Origin: Adineta vaga
Lineage: Eukaryota; Animalia; Rotifera
Direction: 5' to 3'
Length of the DNA stretch: 64,000 nt
NCBI GenBank assembly: GCA_021613535.1
Contig: CP075496.1
Span: forward strand, 13,888,001 to 13,952,000
The notes beneath the pieces are model-generated. The model was not told the origin of the DNA. It ran no database searches and worked only from the letters and a program-made list of their open reading frames with translations. Made by a program: the position numbers and the translations under genes. Shown in pieces: positions 1-12,800 of the stretch (the first letter of the stretch is position 1; each line of letters starts with the position of its first letter).

Positions 1-3000
1 GTTGACGAATCTTGTAAACGTATATAATCATTATTTAATGTTTCTTGTAATAATTCTTTGAGTAATGTTATATTTCTTGTACAAGTTAATGCCAGACCAA
101 AACGATTCTTTTCTACCTGATCATTCATTTGTCTGTATTGTTTTTGAATATATTTATAATCATCAATGGTACCATTTTTAATTCCTTGACAATAAACTGT
201 CGTACGATAATCTGGATTAATTGAATAACTTTTCGGATTTAAACGCCAATTTTGATATTGTAAAATTGCTTCGTTTGTACAAGGTTCGTAATCATTGGCA
301 CAAAGATCACTAATAACAAGTGATCGTAATTGACGAGATAAATAATCCGATGTATTTTCTCCAATTGTCCAACCAAGAAGATGATAAACAGGTTCTTCAA
401 CTGTACGAATATATTGTTGTAATTGTTTATATTCGTTACTATTTTCATTTTGTCCAAACATGATTATGGCATGTTGAATATTAGTTGAAAAAGCTGAAAA
501 TGGAATAAAATTCAATTCTTGTGAAAGATATGTGCATAAACTTAATGGGATTGTAATATTTAAATCTCGTGAACGTGCTAAACTAAATGCATCATCGATT
601 AATTGTGCACGTGAAACAACAGGAAATTGTGAATAATTCGATTTTAAACCAGAAATAATTAAATTCCAATTGTCATTATCATAATTAACACGATAGAAAC
701 CAAATTCATTGATATTAAATATAATCCAATCAGAATTCGAGCCAATTTCATTTAGTTGATCTGTTCGATTCGGTGGTAACCATTGTATTGTTGATAATTT
801 CGAATGAATTAGATAATCATATGGAATATACCATTGAAATTCTAAAGGTTTAAATGGATTGATATAATTCGAGATTTGGCTTTGATTATTAGGATCAAGA
901 AGAAAACGTTTTTGATTCAATGTTAACGAATGATTTTGATAATTTCGTGTTACCATTAGAACAGGATAACCTTCTTGTAATGTCCATGTATCCATAATTT
1001 GTTTTATTGTATAACCAGCTAATCTTGTTGGATTAGTTACATTAGTTAAAAATGACCATAATTCATCTTGAACAGCATTACTATATTTAAAATGATCTAA
1101 ATAATTACTAATTCCATGAAAAAAGGTTGTTTCATTAAGAACTGTATAAATCATTCGAAGAATTGATCCACCTTTGTCATCTATTCGAATTATAGAAAAG
1201 AATTTTACTATAGAAAGAAAATTAAACTTAAATAATTACAAGATATTGTATCGAATATTGAATTGATTTCATCGGGATGTGTGACATCTACACTTATTGG
1301 ATGACTTGTATAAAGACTATCCATGACAAGAACACGTTGAACAGTTGCTAATCAGAGAAAAAGAAATGAAAATTTTTGAAAAACAAAAAAGATTTCCAAA
1401 TCATTTTACTTGTAACAAAAACACTCAATGCTTGAAATTCTGGACTGACATGATTAAGACCAAGAATTTCCACCCATGATGCAAAACCTTCATTTAACCT
1501 AAAAAAAAATCAACCTCAAAAATTCGCTTAAAACGTTCTTCCTCTTCTTCTTCTTCTTCTTCTTTGTCAATTACCAAATATCATTCCACCATTTTGGTGT
1601 AACTATATTTCCAAACCATTGATGTGCAACTTCATGTGAAACAACTTGACCAACACGAAGTTTATTTGCTAAATTTCCTGTTTCAGTATTATAAAGTAAT
1701 GCTGTTTCACGATAAGTAATCATTCCCCAATTTTCCATCGCTCCTAAAACTTAATATTTTGTTTCAACATTTTCAATTGTTCGTAACTTACCGGCGGAAA
1801 AGTCTGGTATTGCAAAATGATCACATTTACTCAATGGATAAGGTAAATTGTATGATTGTTCAAAATAATTAATAACATTTGTACCGACAAATAAAGCGAA
1901 ATCTCCTTCACCTTTACTCATCGCTTCTGGACGTCCGCAAACACTTACACGAATCTTATTAGCTGAAATATTAGATATACATTGAAAATCTGTTAGAACA
2001 AAAGCAACGAGATATGTTGACATGGGAGGTGTTTGTTCAAAACGTGAAATTAATCGACCATTAGGAAGAATTTCCGGTTGATTATTGTTTAACATTTGAC
2101 CGTTCGAACGAACGACAGTAAAACTTGGATCATGTGTTATTGATATTGTAAAATTTGCTTTGAATAAAGGTTCATCAAAACATGGAAATACACGACGAGC
2201 AATCGTTGGCTAAAAGCATCAGCAGAAAACAGATAAACATTTTTGTTCTTTTCAATTTCATTACCTGCATATGTGTCGTACCAATGTTATGTGTAATAAT
2301 TTGTCCCGTATTTGGATTTGTAACATTATATCTACTTAGATAAAATCCAGCCATTTCTCGATCTAAATCCGAAGTATATTCGGATTGAAATTCATATTCT
2401 TGATCTTTTATACATCGTTCTCTTAAACGACATATAATTGTTTCTGATGCTGTAATACTTGTCCAATCACTAATTAGATTATTTATTGTTCCTAAACGTT
2501 TTAAAATCACATAAGATAAACGTAATTGTTTCGTATGAATACGAAGTTCATTCGTTGAACGTGCACAACGCATTCTTATTTGTGTAAAACCCGAAAATCT
2601 CGTGTCAGGTTCAGCATTATTTGGATAAGTTGAACGAAGTTTAACATCAAAATCGATTTTATATGTTAAAGGAAACCAATCTAATGGTAAACGAATAGCT
2701 GCAGTTCGATTTAAAAACCAGATTTCTAAATTTGGTTTCGATTTTGTAACCCATTGTATATTTGCACGAATTCGTTCGATTGATGCTTTAAATTCTACTT
2801 CCACTGCACCCTATTCAAAAGAATAAAACAATTTGAAAAAGAAAAAATGAATTTATTTCAATTTACTTTCTCATTAATTTGTTCAGCAAATCGTTCAAAT
2901 TCTTCCAATTGTGTTAAAGTATTGAATCTACCTGTTACATCTTTAATTAATTCAGCAAAATTTAATGATCTACCATAATCACGAAATAATTGTGTCCATC

Positions 3001-6000
3001 TTGCACGTAAAAATGTCCAACATTCTATTTCTGCTATTAAATTTCGACATATCGAACGAATTCCACTGAGAACATCTTGTCGATGAATAATATTTCGTTC
3101 CGAATGAATATGTATATCGAGTAAATGTCGAATTAATTCAATATCTCTTGTACATGTTAAAGCTGTTTGTATTCGTGCTTTTTCTTGTGGATCATTCGAT
3201 GATTGATATTCTCGTAAAAGAAATTGAAATCGTGCTCGATCACCTAATCGAATACTTGTACAATAAACGACTCGTCGTTGATTTGCCTCAATTGTATTAT
3301 TTGATGGAGAATTAAACCATTCTTCAAATAAATTCTGTGCACGTTGTATACAATGATCAAGATCATATTGACATGCAGTTGAAATAATTATATCACGATG
3401 AAGTGTATCGAGCCATTTATCTTTCAATGGATTATCTACCCAACCAAGTTTATTGTAAATGGGTAGAACAAGATCGACCATATATGAACGAAAACGTTCG
3501 TAAAGATAAAAACCTGGACTATTTGGTGCAATCATTTGTTCCATATATTGAAGACCGGAAAGAATACGTTCCCAAACAATGTATGATTCTTCGGAATGAC
3601 TGTATTCGAGTAAATCGAACACAAGTGATGCAGGAAGAATGTCTAGAACAAAAAGTTTCAAATGTTTAATATTCAATTCGAAAATTCTATGAAGAAATTT
3701 TACTTGCACGTGCTAAATTAAGTGCATCATCAACAAGACCAGCACGTTCAACAATGGAGAATGTATGATGATCGATTTTTAATTGTTGAATAAGTTTAAT
3801 CCAATTCTCTCGGTCATAATTTGTTCGAAAGAATCCTAATAAGTCTGGATTGATTAAAATCCATTCATTCGATTGTACATCAATTGATATTGTTCGATGT
3901 TTTTCCGAAAACCATATGATATTATGTGATAAACTTGTTAATGATTTGATTTTTACTGGAATTGACCATTGATAATTATGTGGAGATTTGAATGGTTGAG
4001 CTTCAGCATCGAATAGAAATTGATGTTGAGTAATATCAATTGTATTTTGTTCATAATTACGAATGATTTCAACGTAAGGATAACCCATTTGATCAGTCCA
4101 TGTACTCATTATATCAGCTAAACTTGTATTCAGAGGTAATTCAATATGATCTTCAAGCATTTGTTCACCTAAAGTTTCCCATAGATCTTTTTGTGTCGCC
4201 GTCGAATATAAATGTTTCGATAGATATTTTGATATTCCACGATTAAATGTTTTATTTCCCATAAAATTTCTCATCATACGTAATATAGATGAACCTTTGG
4301 AATATGTTATTGAATCAAATATACCTGTTAATTGATTATTATGTGTAATTTTCATATTAATTGGATGTGAAAATGAAATAGCATCATTTTGCATAACGGC
4401 TAACCAACGTTTTGCAATAAATTGTTCATATAAATTCCATTCCGGATGAATTTTATCTGTACTAACAAATTCCATCCATTTAGCAAAACCTTCATTTAAC
4501 CATAAATCATTCCACCAAGCTGGTGAAACAAGATCACCAAACCATTGATGTGCTAACTAAAAAAAATCTCAATATAAAATTATACAAAACAAAAAAAGAA
4601 CTATGTCGATTATACTTCATGAGCAACAACTAAAGCAACTTCTTGTTTATTCGATGAAGTTGATGTACGATTATTATAAAATAAACGTGTTTCACGATAG
4701 ATAATACAACCAAAATTTTCCATTGCACCTATGTTAACAGAAGAAAAACTTTCGTTTGTCAACAAGTGTTTTCTCTTACCGGCATCAAAATCTGGTACAG
4801 CAATATGATCAACTTTAGCCAGAGGATAATTCACTTGATATTGTTCTTCGAAATCTTTGAGATTTTTCGTTGCAACTTCTAATGCATAGTACAAATGATT
4901 TCTTTTCTCTGGTTGAGCACAAACACTTGTTGTTATATTTCGATATCGACCTGTATTTTTTTCCGTTAAACAATCGAAATCTGCGACAACAAGTGCTAAT
5001 AGATAAGAACTCATTGGTACAGATTTTTGAAATGTTGTTTTCATCCATCCATTAAAAAGATTTTCTGTTGATTGAATTGGCATATTACTCCACACACGAT
5101 ATTGTTGTTCATGTTCGACAATAATTGTAAATGTTGCTTTCAATGCTGGTTCATCAAAACAAGGTAAAGCTCGTCGGGCTGATATTGGTTCCATTTGTGA
5201 TGCAACTAAATAACGTCGAACTTTATCTTTAGGTCGTATATATGAACTTAAATAAAATCCAGCTGTATCATTTCTTAAATCTCCAATATACATTATTGTC
5301 AGAGAAAATTGTGTATGAATTGGTAATGTTTGATTAAAAATAATAGTAAAAAAATCACGTTCCTCATCGAATGTTGTTCGAATAATTGAAAATTTTGAAT
5401 TATCGATATGAAATGGAGGAACAACAGTTATATAACGTTTGTGTAAAACAATTCGATTCGTTGATTGAACAATGCGTATTTGAATTGTTACTTCACCTTC
5501 GAATATTGAATAACGTTGTGTAAAATCCGTTATATTTAAATAAGGTTTTATATAAAGATTATAATGAATCGGTATTGCAACTGTTGGTAAACGATGTGTT
5601 GTTACATCAGTTGCGAGATTGTCTGGACGAAGAAATGAAGTAATTGCTTGTAGATTAGCATGATTCCATTCAATAGCAGCATTGATTTTTTCAAGAGAAA
5701 GTTGAAATTGTCGATAAGCCGTACCTAATCATGTATAAAAAAGAAATCGAATAAAGAAAAATGTCATTTACCTTTATCAGTAATTGTATTTGCAAATGTA
5801 ATAAATTCTTCTTTTTGTCGATTAGTAACAAATCGACTTGAAACAGCTTCAATAATTCCTGATAAACTTGAAACTGATTTTCCCCATTTGGGAAAAATCT
5901 GTTCCCAATTATCGCGAATCCAATTCCACGCGATTTGATTACCATGTGATGAACGTGCAATACGTTGAATCGATGCCGCTAAATCTTGATCACGAATAAT

Positions 6001-8980
6001 TGGATTTGCTTTCAAATGTTGATTGAGAAACCAAAGAATTAAAGATGGATCTTGTGTACAAGCTAAACCATTTAATAGATTTAATGTTTCACTTGCGACA
6101 TTTTCTTGTATTAAACGTTCCCATAGGAAATTAAATTCTACTCGTGAACCTTCACGAACAATTGTACAATAGACAGTTGAACGAAGTGTTGCAGGTATTT
6201 GATTCAATGCAGGATTTGATAACCAACGTCGATAGGATTTCTTTGCTTCTTCAACACATTCTCGATGACCATAACGACAAGCCGATGATAAAATACTTGG
6301 TTGAAGTAGAGCACGTAACCATTCTTTCGATTGATCAATAGGTGCCCAACCAATTTTATTATATAATGGTAAAACAAGTCCAAGAAAATAACGTTGAACA
6401 TCAAGAAGAATTTCTTGTCCAGTTAATAAATCTTCTTGAAGTCTCATTGCAGAAAATGCCGCTGTCCATGGAACGAATTCATCTTCATCTTTTAAATAAC
6501 GAATTAATTCATAGGCATCACTTGTATTAACAATTGATGTACGAGATAATGCAAAGATATCATCAATCAGAGCACCGCGTGTTATCGTTGGAATACGCCT
6601 ATGACCACTTAGAAGTTGACTGATAATTAAACGAAAATTTCTTGAATCATATTTTGTACGATAAATACCAAGATAATCAGGATTGGCTAGAAGCCAATCA
6701 GAATCGGATGTTGTTATTGGTAAACGTGTGAAGGTGTCATTTAACCAAAGAACAGGATTTTCATTTAATTTCTATTAAAAACAAGGGATATTCTTTTTCT
6801 TTGCTTATTCAAAAAATTGACATGATAATGTCAGACAGAAAAGACATTTGCCCTTTTTAACTTTTTAATAAAGGTTATTAGGATCTGCTCTTTTGTCCTT
6901 AAATCTTAAATAAACAATTCTATCGAGGTAATTGAGAATGTCAGTGGGTCATATCATACATCTCTATCTATATATCTTACTTGTGTTGATGTTGAATCAA
7001 AATATTTGAATGGTATCCACCATTTTTCTTGTTTGGTTGTTGATGAAAATAAATTAAACGGTTTTTGTTGAATTGTAATGTAACTTGTTTTATTCGATCG
7101 TTGTTGTCGACGTAAAGGTGAAGCATATTCTCTATTAAGTTCAATAATTGGATAACCTGCTTGTTGTGTCCATCCATTCATAATTTTCTCTACATTAATT
7201 TTATTTTCAGCTGCATCACTTAAATATCTCCAAAGATCTTCTTGTGTTGCTGATGCATAACTTAAATTTCTCAAATAATTTTGAATACCTTTCTGAAAAA
7301 TATCTTCACCTAAAAACATTGACATCATACGAATTAATGTTGCACCTTTATCATATGTTATAGAATCAAATAATTGAAATATATCAGCAGGATTTGTTGA
7401 ACTTATACTTATTGGACGTGATGTTGGTAATGAATCAGCTTCCATAAATGGAAAAATCTTTTCAACTACAATTCGTTCATCTTGCATCCATGTTGGTTCA
7501 AGAGCATCCGATGCTAAAGTTTCCATATAACTAGCAAATCCTTCTTTTAACCATCTATATCAATAGGAAAATGTAGTCAAATATATTTCTTTGTTAAATA
7601 ACTTACAATTCACCCCACCATGCTGGTGAAACGAGATTTCCAAACCATTGATGTGCAACTTCATGTGCAACAACTGTTGTAATATATTGTTTTCGTGATG
7701 CTGAAACAGTTTTTTCATCAAAAAACAAACCAACTTCTCGATAAATAACTAAACCTACAATGAGAAAACAAAACTATCTTTGAATAAATCTCTTCTACGA
7801 AAGAAAAACAAAATTCATTTTCTTACCATAATTTTCCATTGCTCCAGCACCAAAATCTGGTACAGCAAAATGTTCTATTTTCGGTAGAGGATAAGTTATA
7901 TTAAAATAACGATTAAATAATTCTAATGATTTCGATGCAATTTCATCGGCATAAGCTAATTGTGGTAGAATATCAATTCTTCCACAAACTCGAGATTTAA
8001 TTTTCGTTATTCCAATAAGTCGATCAGGTCGACAATCGAAATCCGATTTCGGTGCAACAATTAACGCTAATAAAAATGTTGACATATTCAATGTCGGTGT
8101 AAAACGTGATAAAATTCTTCTATCTTTCAATCGTTCCGTCGATTGAATTTCTCCATTGGACCAAACACGTTCCGATGGATCATGAATAACATTTATATAA
8201 AAGATTGCTTTTCGTGCCGGTTCATCAATACATGGAAACATTGTTCGAGCATGTGTTGGTTCCATTTGTGATGTCATAAATGTTTTATTCATTCCATTTA
8301 TATCCATATATTTACTTATATAAAGACCATGTAATTCATGTGAAATATTTGCTGAATAAGTTAAATATAATGTATAAGTATGAGTTGGAAGAAATGATAA
8401 TGTAAATTTTAATTTAATTAATTCACTATAATGATCATATGTCCAACTTTTAATCAATGGTAATGGTGATGTTGTTGAATTAACGATTCTTATTGTTGAA
8501 TTATCTAAGAATAAATCTTTTAAATGAAGAATAACTTCATTCGTAGATTCAAGACATGTAAATGTATATAAAAGTGTACCTAAATGAGAAAATTATTCAA
8601 TTAGGAAATGCTGAATAAAAAAGAAAAATAAACAAACCAGTAAATGTTTCTGCTGTTATGTTTGGTGCAATTGTTAATCGGTAAACTTCTTGTTTTAAAT
8701 TCGTTGGAATACGTTCTACAGGTAATGCAATGGGTGTTGTTGTTTCAAATGGTTGTCTTGTTGTTGTTATTAAACTTGTTGAATTTGAATCATTCATTAT
8801 TCGTCGTTGTTTAACACCGAAATAGATTGTTAAAACTAATAGAATAATGAAGATAGCAATAATAAGAGATAGAATAATCCAAAAAAGATTCTTTTTCATT
8901 TGATATGTATTTTTTGTTGAGGATGATGAATGAGTCATTGGAGGATCTGTTATTGTTAAATCAAATGATTCGGAAACCAT
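1..8980 (-). CDS. Multi-exon type II membrane M1 (aminopeptidase N-like) metallopeptidase with >=3 tandem complete peptidase units in one ORF; 3' end lies beyond the window
   Basis: Single N-terminal signal-anchor ([25 protein letters not shown]) after ATG at 8980. Three sets of GAMEN / HE(V/L)AHQWFG / WL(K/N)EGFA / catalytic Tyr in Y(D/S)KG, each followed by an ERAP1-like C-terminal region. Unit junctions read through without a stop (..[41 protein letters not shown].. near 5700-5580; ..[38 protein letters not shown].. in ORF 2175-2804). ORF fragments join via GT-AG introns. Confidence 0.9.
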
Positions 8981-9843
8981 GATAATTAAAATTAAGTATT
9001 ATGTGAAGATAAATTTGTGGGAAAAATCGATTGAGATTACATAGAAAATTCGATTTTTCAACGGAATTTGTTCGATGTTGTTGATCTTCTAAATAGAAAT
9101 GAATTGTCAAGACTTTTCAAGAATGATTTGTATAGACAATTAGATTAGAAAAGACATAAGATGTTCACAAGCATTATTTTTTAATGGATTTCATCATCGT
9201 CGATGTTGTTGTTTTTATGAAACGAGAAGAAGAAGAAGAAGACTAGGCGTATATCGAACTAGACGTGTGTGTCCTTTTCATTAAGGGAGTAATCTTTTGA
9301 AAAAGGCAAAGAAAACTGATTGACTTCACTGTTCTTCTTTTGTCTTTCTCTAATCTTTCGAAGACAATGAATTGACATTCAAATACATATCTATAAAGGA
9401 ACTCTTTTTTTTCTTTCCTAAAACAAAAACGTCAGTAGGATATAAATGATGATAAACATCCTGATTTTTAATTTGAAATCGATCAAAACAACAAGATTTT
9501 TATCAACATACTTGAACTAGATTAAGATTTGTAAAGCGTTGAAATTGATGGGAAATATATATTTATCTGTATTGAAGAAGAATGATGATTATATCTTCGC
9601 TTATATTTCATTGAATAATAGCAAGAAACGTATGATGATACAATAATGTGTAACTCAACAAGAGATAACAATGTGTTCTTAGAAAAGGAGTCAATCTATC
9701 ATCACAGTAGGCAAAAGTAGTTGACAGCATTGATAGACAAGAGAAGACCAAGGAAAAACACATATCTCTCGTCAGAATATATTCTCCTATTCTATTGAAT
9801 AAGAACAAAAAAAAAGGTTTTTTATCTGTTTCTTCTTTTAAAG

Positions 9844-12800
9844 ATAACGGATCAAGCTCGTTTGAATTATGAAGAACAAAATCAATATAAAATTCGTGTT
9901 CAATTTTTCAATCAAACTCAGTTCATTGAAGAAGCATTTTTGATTGAAATTCAAGATATCAATGAATCACCTTATAATCTACAATGTTCCCGTATGCATA
10001 AGAAAATACAGGGGGGAAAAAGGAGAGAAAGAATTTCGTTTCTATTCTTTAGATCAAACAGGTTTTTGTACGGCAATAGATGATGATTTGAATCAAACAT
10101 TGAAATTTCATGCGAAAACTATTGAAAATTATCTAAATGAAACATATACGGAAATCATCTGTACTGATAATGGTCAACCACCTTTATCGGTAAAAGTTTC
10201 TATTTGATTTCTTTTCCCTAAAACTTCGTTTCTCTCTCTTTCTCTCTCTCTCAGATATCAACATGGATAAAAGTTTTATCTAATGAATTAAACTTAATAT
10301 TCGTTCCTGTTGTTCCTTTAATCATACCAATCATGGATGAGAATACAAACAGAGATAAACCAACAAGAGATGTAAGTAGACATATATTCTTAATGATCAT
10401 CAAGGAATTCTTTTACTTCATCGTCTTTTATCTTTAACCTTTCTTTTCCTCTGAAATGGAATGGAAATCTGATTAGAATCTTCTTGTTTGATCATGACAG
10501 AATGATAAAATTAACAGTTAATTTAGTTAACGAATCATTGTTTAGAATATTGTCATATCAGATTTCAATGATGGAGACAACACAGAACGTCATCGACGAC
10601 AAGTTAATTCTCCACCTCAAGTAAGCAACAAAGAGAAATATTCAAAAGATACACGAATTTGTGCGGTTTTTTTTTCTTCTTTTCTTCATAGGATATACAT
10701 TTCAATATGTTCGATTTAACTGTTCCAGAAAATGCACGAGATGTTGATATTGCCAGTGTTTATGTTATTGATGATGAAAATGATAATTATGTATGTAATG
10801 TTGATACTCATGATGCACCGAATGATAGACAACCATTTGCAATTGTCAATGGAATATTACGTACTTCAATATTTATACAGAATCAACGTGAGTTTTGAAA
10901 TTAAATCCAATGATAAACATCGAAATATTTCGTTCGTAGTTTATGATCTTGATTATGAAACAATGCCAGTTTATCATATAACAGTGATGTGTACTGATCC
11001 AATTCATCAGTTTACTATTAGTAAAAATTTTAGTATTGATATAAGTGATTTAAATGAAGCACCAGTTCAATTAAGAATCGAACCAAATACAGTAAGAAGA
11101 GAATTAATGTTGATTGGTTTTTGTTTTTTCTTCATGAAAATATTTTAGCTTCCAGAAAATTCACCTATCGGATATGTTATTGGTCGATTTCATACAACGG
11201 ATCCTGATTTATCTTCACTTAATCAATCATTTACATATTCAATTATAACAGATCCTAAACATAGTTTTCAAATCAATAATGATCAATTAATTGTAAGTAA
11301 ATGCCTCTTTATCTTCATTAAATCAAATCTTATTCATTAGTTAACACGTACCAATAATGTTGAAATGTGTATTGATCAACCGGATTTATGTCCACATGAT
11401 TATGAACAAATAAGTTCAGTATTAATTCGTATACATGTCGAAGATAATGGTATTCCACGTGAAGGACAAAAATTTTGGATACAAATTCCAATAACGGATG
11501 AAAATGATCCACCAATTGATTTACAATTAAATCAAAATACGGTGAGAGAAAATTCACCAAATGGAACATTGATTGGAACATTTTCCGTAAAAGATCAAGA
11601 TTTATATCAAGCACATACATTTATATTGCTCTTTCAAAGTTCATTGATACATAATGAAGAAGTATTTACAATTGAAGATAATAGTTTACGTTTAATTAAA
11701 TCACCAGATTATGAAAAAGAACAATCCTATCTTATTACTGTTCAAGCAATTGATAATGGAACGATACCATTAAGTGTAAGATGAACCGTTAGAATCTATC
11801 AGGAACCGTTTTTTCCTCTGTGAATTGTTTCTTTTTAGGTTACAAGTGATTTTCTTATTCAAATACTTGATGTCAATGAACTTCCGAAAACATATGCATT
11901 CATTTCAAATCTTGATGATATTATATCAAATAATACAATAAATGATTTATTAAACGATACAAAACAATCAGTTCGAACGATTTATTTATCAGAAAATGCC
12001 TATTTTCAATCGAAACTTGGACGTATTGTATTTTTAATGGAAGATCGTGATCGTGATTTGAATTTAAAAGGATCTGATGATTCAAATGAATTAAGTTTTT
12101 CTAAACCAACATGTGAATTTTTATCAACAATTTCATATCGTTCATTATGTACTTCGATTGTTACCATTGAAAATCATCAATCAATATTAAATGATAACAC
12201 ATCTCTCGGTTATATTATCAATACTCCATTAATCTTAACAAGTAATGCTCAAACATGGATATTTCCACGAAATTTACGAATTAAATTTGAAAATATTGTA
12301 AGTTAAATCTAATTAAGAAGAAACTATTCGATTACATTGTTTAGTCATTAACAATAAATGGTCAATTGACTGAATCAGTTGATATTCTTCGAACAAATTC
12401 AACTGGAAAGGAAATCGGTAAACTCAATGCAATTGATTTAGTAACAACGGAAAATTCTATCGAGAGTATTATACTAAATCCTGATAGAACTTTATCGTAT
12501 CCATTAGAATTGACAGATTCCAAGATGCTCAAAGTGAGTAGTTTTGTTTTTTCAATGATCAATTTCTCGAAGTGATAAAATAGATTCGTGATGATGTGAA
12601 TTTATCTTTACCGGATTCTCCACGGACATTCAATGTAAGTGTGTTAATAGCAATACGATATGAAGATGAAGACGAAAATCCAAACATTGAAAAATATTTC
12701 ATTGTAAATCTCAAAGAAAAAAGTGATTTTTTCCTTACATTATCAAATAATCAAGTAAAATGAAGAAAAAAAAAGTCAATGAATTCTATTCATATTCGAT

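Follow-up and report, generated by a model that had tools for sequence, protein, structure and literature searches.

Can an M1 aminopeptidase be built as a chain of complete catalytic units held by a single membrane anchor? M1 aminopeptidases are textbook single-unit enzymes, regulated via dimerisation and the movement of domain IV. The question is raised by a locus in Adineta vaga (a bdelloid rotifer), located at the start of a 64,000-nucleotide (nt) stretch of contig 4 (13,888,001-13,952,000) which, as the whole stretch analysed, is called here the window. An earlier sequence-only reading had described this locus as a tethered multi-enzyme of roughly 2,700 or more amino acids (aa), with at least three complete M1 peptidases on one anchor. 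From our analysis the locus is most likely a single 15-exon gene encoding a 2,778-aa type II membrane glycoprotein with three head-to-tail M1 units resembling aminopeptidase N.

Three M1 units in one reading frame

The gene lies on the minus strand, running from an ATG at 8980 to a TAA 321 nt past base 1 of the window, and its spliced frame of 2,778 aa has zero internal stops. The model was obtained by chaining open segments from a six-frame reading along the minus strand of 1-9100. Splice sites were inferred from sequence and homology, with GT..AG pairs picked for keeping the frame and restoring conserved motifs of the M1 family. The joined model served for length, hydropathy, motif positions and the cutting of units for trees, while all searches were run exon by exon. 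Set against eight M1 references with one or several units, the model showed no unit-specific gap and only one insert, of 9 residues.

Pfam searches of the minus strand of 1-8980 gave three ordered sets of Peptidase_M1_N, Peptidase_M1 and ERAP1_C, all above gathering scores and all in the one 2,778-aa frame, in agreement with the proposal of at least three complete peptidases. For unit 1 the E-values were 1.5e-34 (Peptidase_M1_N), up to 2.3e-33 (Peptidase_M1) and 4e-76 (ERAP1_C), and for unit 2 they were 1.7e-47 (Peptidase_M1) and 2.4e-56 (ERAP1_C). The best matches in the PDB were human aminopeptidase N (4fyq, 2.5e-61) and aminopeptidase A (4kx7, 4.4e-61), both of them single-unit proteins.

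The GAMEN motif is present in all three units, at 7845-7831, at 4728-4715 (with its first G on the preceding exon) and at 1744-1730, corresponding to aa 360, 1255 and 2157. Every unit also has HExxH-18-E, as HEVAH at 7665-7651 in unit 1, as HELAH in unit 2 after splicing at 4615-4557, and as HEVAH at 1636-1622 in unit 3. The positions assigned to these two motifs beforehand, including the HExxH split by an intron in unit 2, were all correct. The zinc-ligand Glu of unit 1 sits in WLKEGF. A catalytic Tyr segment of the type F-D-x-I-(T/S)-Y-x-K-G was found in all three units, reading FDSITYSKG in unit 2 and FDTIS|YDKGG in unit 3, where it is rejoined by removal of a 59-nt intron (1239-1181). Judged by these motifs, all three units are intact at the zinc-binding, exopeptidase and transition-state residues and are apparently active.

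The units have diverged, as the earlier reading had noted, with pairwise identities of 33-38%. One difference falls at the residue before the conserved Pro-x-x-A-R, where units 1 and 2 have a Glu (SQMEP) but unit 3 has a Gln (THMQP); the same pattern is found in the window gene (copy A), in its ohnologue (copy B) and in a metagenome contig (L007) that carries a similar gene. We take this position to be the one that contacts the free amino group of the substrate in ERAP1 (Glu) and in aminopeptidase N (Gln). The difference would fit a divided specificity, without showing it.

The protein has a single hydrophobic helix at aa ~28-55, a type II signal anchor by hydropathy. Windows of 19 residues with a hydropathy above 1.6 start only at residues 27-41 (peak 3.38), and the maximum elsewhere is 1.39. 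There is an in-frame stop just upstream of the ATG at 8980, and an equivalent start Met in copy B, in L007 and in a Rotaria locus (L009). In units 2 and 3 the first Met comes no earlier than the middle of the N-domain, and neither unit has its own hydrophobic segment. Hence only unit 1 brings a start codon and a transmembrane anchor, as had been claimed. The 2,778-aa protein also contains 36 N-glycosylation sequons.

The units are joined within exons

The claim that units 1 and 2 run straight into their successors was confirmed, as both junction exons are open. The junction 1 exon (exon 6, 5724-4780) holds the terminal helix of unit 1 (5722-5630), a 12-aa linker (5629-5594) and then the RLP motif (5593-5585) and Peptidase_M1_N domain of unit 2. 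The junction 2 exon (exon 10, 2810-2265) holds the terminal helix of unit 2, RTAAI (2708-2694) as a linker of ~5 residues, and the RLP (2693-2685) and first part of Peptidase_M1_N of unit 3. The end of each of units 1 and 2 therefore shares an exon and a continuous frame with the start of the next unit. The linkers, at 12 and ~5 residues, are shorter than the ~15-20 aa originally estimated. Aligned with the C-terminus of unit 3, the next unit begins 0-5 residues past the normal stop position, and at junction 2 the RLP falls exactly at the expected stop position. The junction 1 exon was modelled with AlphaFold2 (alignment of 26 sequences, mean predicted local distance difference test score (pLDDT) of 62). 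In this model residues 2-31 are helical, residues 32-48 are coil and a beta sandwich starts at residue 49, with a pLDDT below 50 for residues 27-43.

Each junction exon is preceded by a small intron. The first (5771-5725, 47 nt, GTAAAT...GATTAG) has an in-frame stop at 5764 and on removal gives the joined reading ...TITDK-G-TAYRQF.... The second (2866-2811, 56 nt, GT-AG) has a stop at 2858 and gives ...EQINEK-GAVEVEF...; it is the sole frame-keeping GT..AG pair found ahead of the junction 2 exon. Both intron-internal stops had been pointed out in the earlier reading. At 47 and 56 nt these introns are too small for a promoter and a first exon.

This arrangement bears directly on whether the locus could instead be three neighbouring but separate genes, an array of decaying pseudogenes or an artefact of assembly. 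Tandem paralogues are common, gene predictors do fuse neighbours, and the Rotaria locus L009 carries a single unit with only a vestige of unit 2. In the A. vaga gene, however, the units follow each other without any intervening stop, ATG, signal sequence or intergenic space, and one exon holds both the end of a unit and the start of its successor. Separate genes are thus contradicted by the sequence itself.

The stops within the junction introns suggest a different possibility, a regulated retention of the 47- and 56-nt introns that would yield mainly one- and two-unit anchored enzymes, with the full chain as a minor product. Both introns directly precede the exon of a terminal helix, with a stop 1-2 codons from the donor, and unit 3 has no intron at the equivalent place. 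The products of retention would, however, miss the last helix of ERAP1_C, and in introns with 70% A+T a stop near the donor is to be expected by chance. Furthermore, the first stop is 20 codons in for a Rotaria sequence (L011) and 7 codons in for the junction 2 intron of copy B, so the early stop is not conserved. Together with the selection on units 2 and 3 described below, this makes such a switch very unlikely.

At its far end the gene stops after unit 3. The possibility that further units follow beyond base 1, left open by the earlier reading, was ruled out by the TAA 321 nt past the window edge, and no further M1 sequence was found in the 10 kb past the gene end or at other nearby places on contig 4, which fixes the number of units at three. 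The protein C-terminus reads '...ANIRWMDTIGRDMRRWLSINTVKR*', with an AATAAA ~160 nt after the TAA.

Conservation of the three-unit gene in bdelloids

The host genome spans 100.8 Mb in six contigs with ~30% G+C. In the A. vaga AV20 assembly there are six chromosomes, of which pairs 1-3 are homoeologous to three other pairs (PMC8494291). Copy B of the gene lies on contig 1 (12,579,234-12,588,342) and likewise has three units with both junctions open. The two copies share 67% nucleotide identity over the first 1.5 kb, and at the amino-acid level they are 54-67% identical. In long alignments each unit of copy A is 51-62% identical to the collinear unit of copy B, as against 29-35% to the other units; the triplication therefore predates the split between the two ohnologues. 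The three units arose by internal duplication within the rotifer lineage, ahead of that split. The catalytic motifs (GAMEN, HExxH-18-E and Tyr) are all kept in copy A and in L007, and also in copy B with the exception of its unit 3, which has GGMEN instead of GAMEN. In a census of the genome these two ohnologues were the only three-unit M1 loci, and the other M1 loci, about eleven, were single-unit.

The nearest named relatives are Rotaria proteins, with 61-73% identity. The contig L007 (10.4 kb, metagenome) is A-like, with 72-86% amino-acid identity per block, and carries units 1-3 with both junctions open. Its junction 1 linker is one codon longer than that of copy A and two longer than that of copy B, and at junction 2 copy B and L007 are identical in length. 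The sequence L011 (labelled Rotaria sp. Silwood2) is B-like and has junction 1 open. A word search with the junction 1 exon found ~25 environmental open reading frames (ORFs), 61-76% identical, in which helix, linker and unit 2 follow each other in one frame. These split into A-type and B-type groups, and their linker lengths vary by whole codons only. The fused frame is hence retained not only in the ohnologue but also in other bdelloids and in environmental sequences. One further protein, P0203, was considered as crossing a junction and rejected as a partial model of unit 2.

A locus of Rotaria sp. Silwood1 (CAJNZF010000185, L009:9342-12956) encodes a single-unit relative of unit 1 (P0134, 61% identity). 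It is followed by a short ORF, 'RLLPFDIPLHYDLYVKLYLNVTD', which is a vestige of the start of unit 2, and then by 8 kb with no M1 sequence. Either units 2-3 were lost secondarily from that copy or the sequence is misassembled, and since only one unit and the vestige remain, the junctions cannot be checked there.

We then compared nonsynonymous with synonymous substitution rates (dN/dS, Nei-Gojobori) over nine blocks that cover all domains of all three units. The ratios were 0.08-0.39 at dS 0.64-1.45, and every unit is under purifying selection. Ratios well below 1 throughout speak against a decaying pseudogene array, and the same arrangement on two chromosomes, on contigs from independent assemblies and in metagenomes speaks against an artefact. 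Taken together with the shared exons, these data make the group of explanations that dispense with a single gene extremely improbable. The selection on units 2 and 3 is as strong as that on unit 1, so they must be translated, which is possible only through the junctions; this counts against intron retention as the main outcome.

The linkers evolve faster, with dN/dS of 0.43-0.74, yet the frame stays open. A relaxed joint would also be found in a polyprotein, where the chain is translated whole and then cut at the linkers to give one anchored and two soluble enzymes. The junction 1 linker is predicted to be unstructured and its dN/dS exceeds that of the domains; several multi-unit brush-border hydrolases are cleaved after synthesis, as with sucrase-isomaltase and lactase-phlorizin hydrolase. 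We consider this explanation unlikely. An R-x-K/R-R site is absent from the entire 2,778 aa, which weighs mildly against furin-type processing, although other proteases are possible. The junction 2 linker has only ~5 residues and no conserved cleavage-like motif. Moreover, linker sequences differ between A-type and B-type copies, whereas a recognised cleavage site would be conserved.

Multi-unit M1 proteins in other animals

The earlier reading had implied that a multi-unit M1 protein would be unique. This did not hold in an exhaustive profile-free protein search with the junction exon. Among its best 150 representatives, 43 were longer than 1,300 aa and 23 carried more than one full M1 unit (two units in 20 cases, three in 3), the median gap between unit envelopes in the multi-unit proteins being 11 residues. 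Predictions with two to five M1 units occur in Hymenoptera, beetles, flies, molluscs, echinoderms, nematodes and mites. The sources, all automatic predictions, include Eretmocerus, Anthophora, Prorops, Polistes, Chelonus and Dufourea among Hymenoptera, as well as beetles, flies, stick insects, an ostracod, the molluscs Haliotis and Solemya, a sea star, a hookworm and a mite. Examples are the proteins of Anthophora (CAK9796737, 2,686 aa), Polistes (XP_043498883, 2,623 aa), Eretmocerus (KAJ8681953, 2,733 aa), Haliotis (XP_067653450, 1,899 aa) and Acanthaster (XP_022081851, 1,840 aa). No description of multi-unit M1 enzymes was found in the literature searched.

Phylogenies of the separate units, a check proposed in the earlier reading, were built with FastTree (130 units) and with IQ-TREE (LG+C20 PMSF, 48 units). 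Both trees place the units of any given multi-unit protein closest to one another, and thus the fusions are independent. The rotifer units form one clade that includes the Rotaria relative of unit 1 (support of 97 for units 1 and 2, and of 93 and 95 with unit 3 added). Units 1, 2 and 3 of Hymenoptera form a separate clade, in which the units are orthologous across wasps and bees. The trees rule out an ancient fusion shared with Hymenoptera, as the rotifer and hymenopteran chains are not orthologous unit by unit. These topologies indicate separate internal duplications in each lineage. Concerted evolution could mimic independence for very similar pairs of units (e.g. in Musca), but not for the deeply diverged units of the rotifer protein.

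Several units in chains from other animals (P0004, P0012, P0018, P0023 and P0037) are without GxMEN and/or HExxH-18-E, so that active and pseudo-enzyme units may occur side by side in multi-unit M1 chains elsewhere.

Exon structure and neighbouring sequence

The introns of the gene are all GT-AG and range from 47 to 209 nt, most being 47-76 nt and a single one 209 nt. Exon 1 (8980-8638) carries the ATG and encodes a cytosolic tail of ~27 aa, the signal-anchor helix and a Ser/Thr-rich stalk, as well as the first strand of unit 1 (ERIPTNL...). Unit 1 continues through exon 2 (8579-7827), exon 3 (7754-7607), exon 4 (7554-6981) and exon 5 (6771-5772), the last of which holds its ERAP1_C domain. 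After the junction 1 exon, unit 2 is encoded by exon 7 (4728-4616), exon 8 (4556-3704) and exon 9 (3642-2867). After the junction 2 exon, unit 3 occupies exon 11 (2209-1792), exon 12 (1743-1575), exon 13 (1498-1410), exon 14 (1347-1240) and exon 15, which starts at 1180 and ends in the TAA beyond the window. The 76-nt intron 1574-1499 on the minus strand, between WWNDIW and LNEGF of unit 3, contains an imperfect (GAA)n run of ~27 nt.

The earlier intron set was right for the two junction introns and for the intron splitting HE|LAH of unit 2 (4615-4557), and it missed one further intron inside the unit 2 ORF (4779-4729, 51 nt, GT-AG). This intron is stop-free and in frame and is therefore read by an ORF scan as 17 extra residues inside DFDAG|AMEN; the matching intron has stops in copy B and in L007. 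The HE|LAH intron is present in copies A and B and in L011, and absent from the A-like L007 (L007:5743-6837), a distribution that indicates loss or gain among close bdelloids.

On the plus strand, ORFs with cadherin-like motifs (...DINESPY..., ...DNGQPPLS...) at 9862-10207 mark a divergent neighbour gene, starting ~880 nt from the ATG at 8980. Upstream of copy B there is instead an ORF of B-box-like zinc-finger type, so the two copies do not share local synteny on that side.

Discussion

Collectively our data argue for one tethered three-enzyme protein, a reading that is well supported at the level of DNA and evolution. The predicted layout is a short cytosolic tail, a signal-anchor helix, a Ser/Thr stalk and three M1 units. 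The chain would be made whole, and its signal anchor would insert it into the membrane and leave the three units on the extracellular side as in aminopeptidase N, probably at a digestive or absorptive surface. There it would trim N-terminal residues from peptides. A single anchor would fix the dosage of the three diverged units at 1:1:1, and the units probably differ in substrate preference.

Some points weigh against this interpretation. Protein collections yielded no spliced long relative, and only DNA-derived bdelloid ORFs, several starting inside an intron, although the word search is blind to proteins more than 1.75 times the query length. If either junction intron were retained, translation would stop with the first or the second unit and shorter isoforms would result. 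Finally, the short linkers may not suit the domain IV dimerisation and the open/closed movement of enzymes of the aminopeptidase N type.

A natural three-unit chain offers a ready system for studying the effects of covalent tethering on specificity, dosage and conformational coupling. The same kind of fusion has repeatedly arisen, being found in insects, molluscs, echinoderms, nematodes, mites and rotifers, which warns annotators against splitting multi-unit M1 models. These proteins form an unstudied class of multi-catalytic ectopeptidases, some of them in pest or parasite groups, in which aminopeptidases N serve as toxin receptors or vaccine antigens. It is conceivable, if somewhat doubtful, that the chaining of aminopeptidase N units is a recurrent selected design of invertebrates with at least a dozen origins, and that bdelloids have kept three active specialised units since before the split of copies A and B. 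If this were true, short rigid joints could allow relay trimming through residues that are hard for any single unit, and could couple the open/closed movements of the units. The finding gains weight if the recurrent fusions prove functional.

Comparison with known ectoenzymes

Each rotifer unit has the same set of M1_N, catalytic and ERAP1_C domains as aminopeptidase N and glutamyl aminopeptidase (4fyq, 4kx7), together with GAMEN, HExxH-18-E and the catalytic Tyr. The rotifer protein further resembles these enzymes in its type II signal anchor, its Ser/Thr stalk and its many N-glycosylation sequons. Known enzymes of the aminopeptidase N type have one unit per chain (~960 aa) and pair non-covalently, whereas the rotifer chain of 2,778 aa carries three, and units 2 and 3 are without an anchor of their own.

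The multi-unit predictions from other invertebrates resemble the rotifer protein in having full M1 units head to tail with very short joints, and those of Anthophora and Polistes also keep all three sets of catalytic motifs. They are not orthologous to the rotifer protein, however, and many have units without GxMEN or HExxH, whereas the rotifer protein keeps all of them.

Internal duplication has also produced multi-catalytic membrane ectoenzymes in sucrase-isomaltase, maltase-glucoamylase, lactase-phlorizin hydrolase, somatic ACE and carboxypeptidase D. Ectoenzymes of the sucrase-isomaltase type have one anchor and two to four homologous, diverged catalytic units translated from one mRNA. These enzymes belong to unrelated folds and families (GH31, GH1, M2 and M14) and differ from the rotifer protein in the end that is anchored and in processing. 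The likeness would hence be one of design only, an analogy in which several diverged catalytic units share a single membrane anchor.

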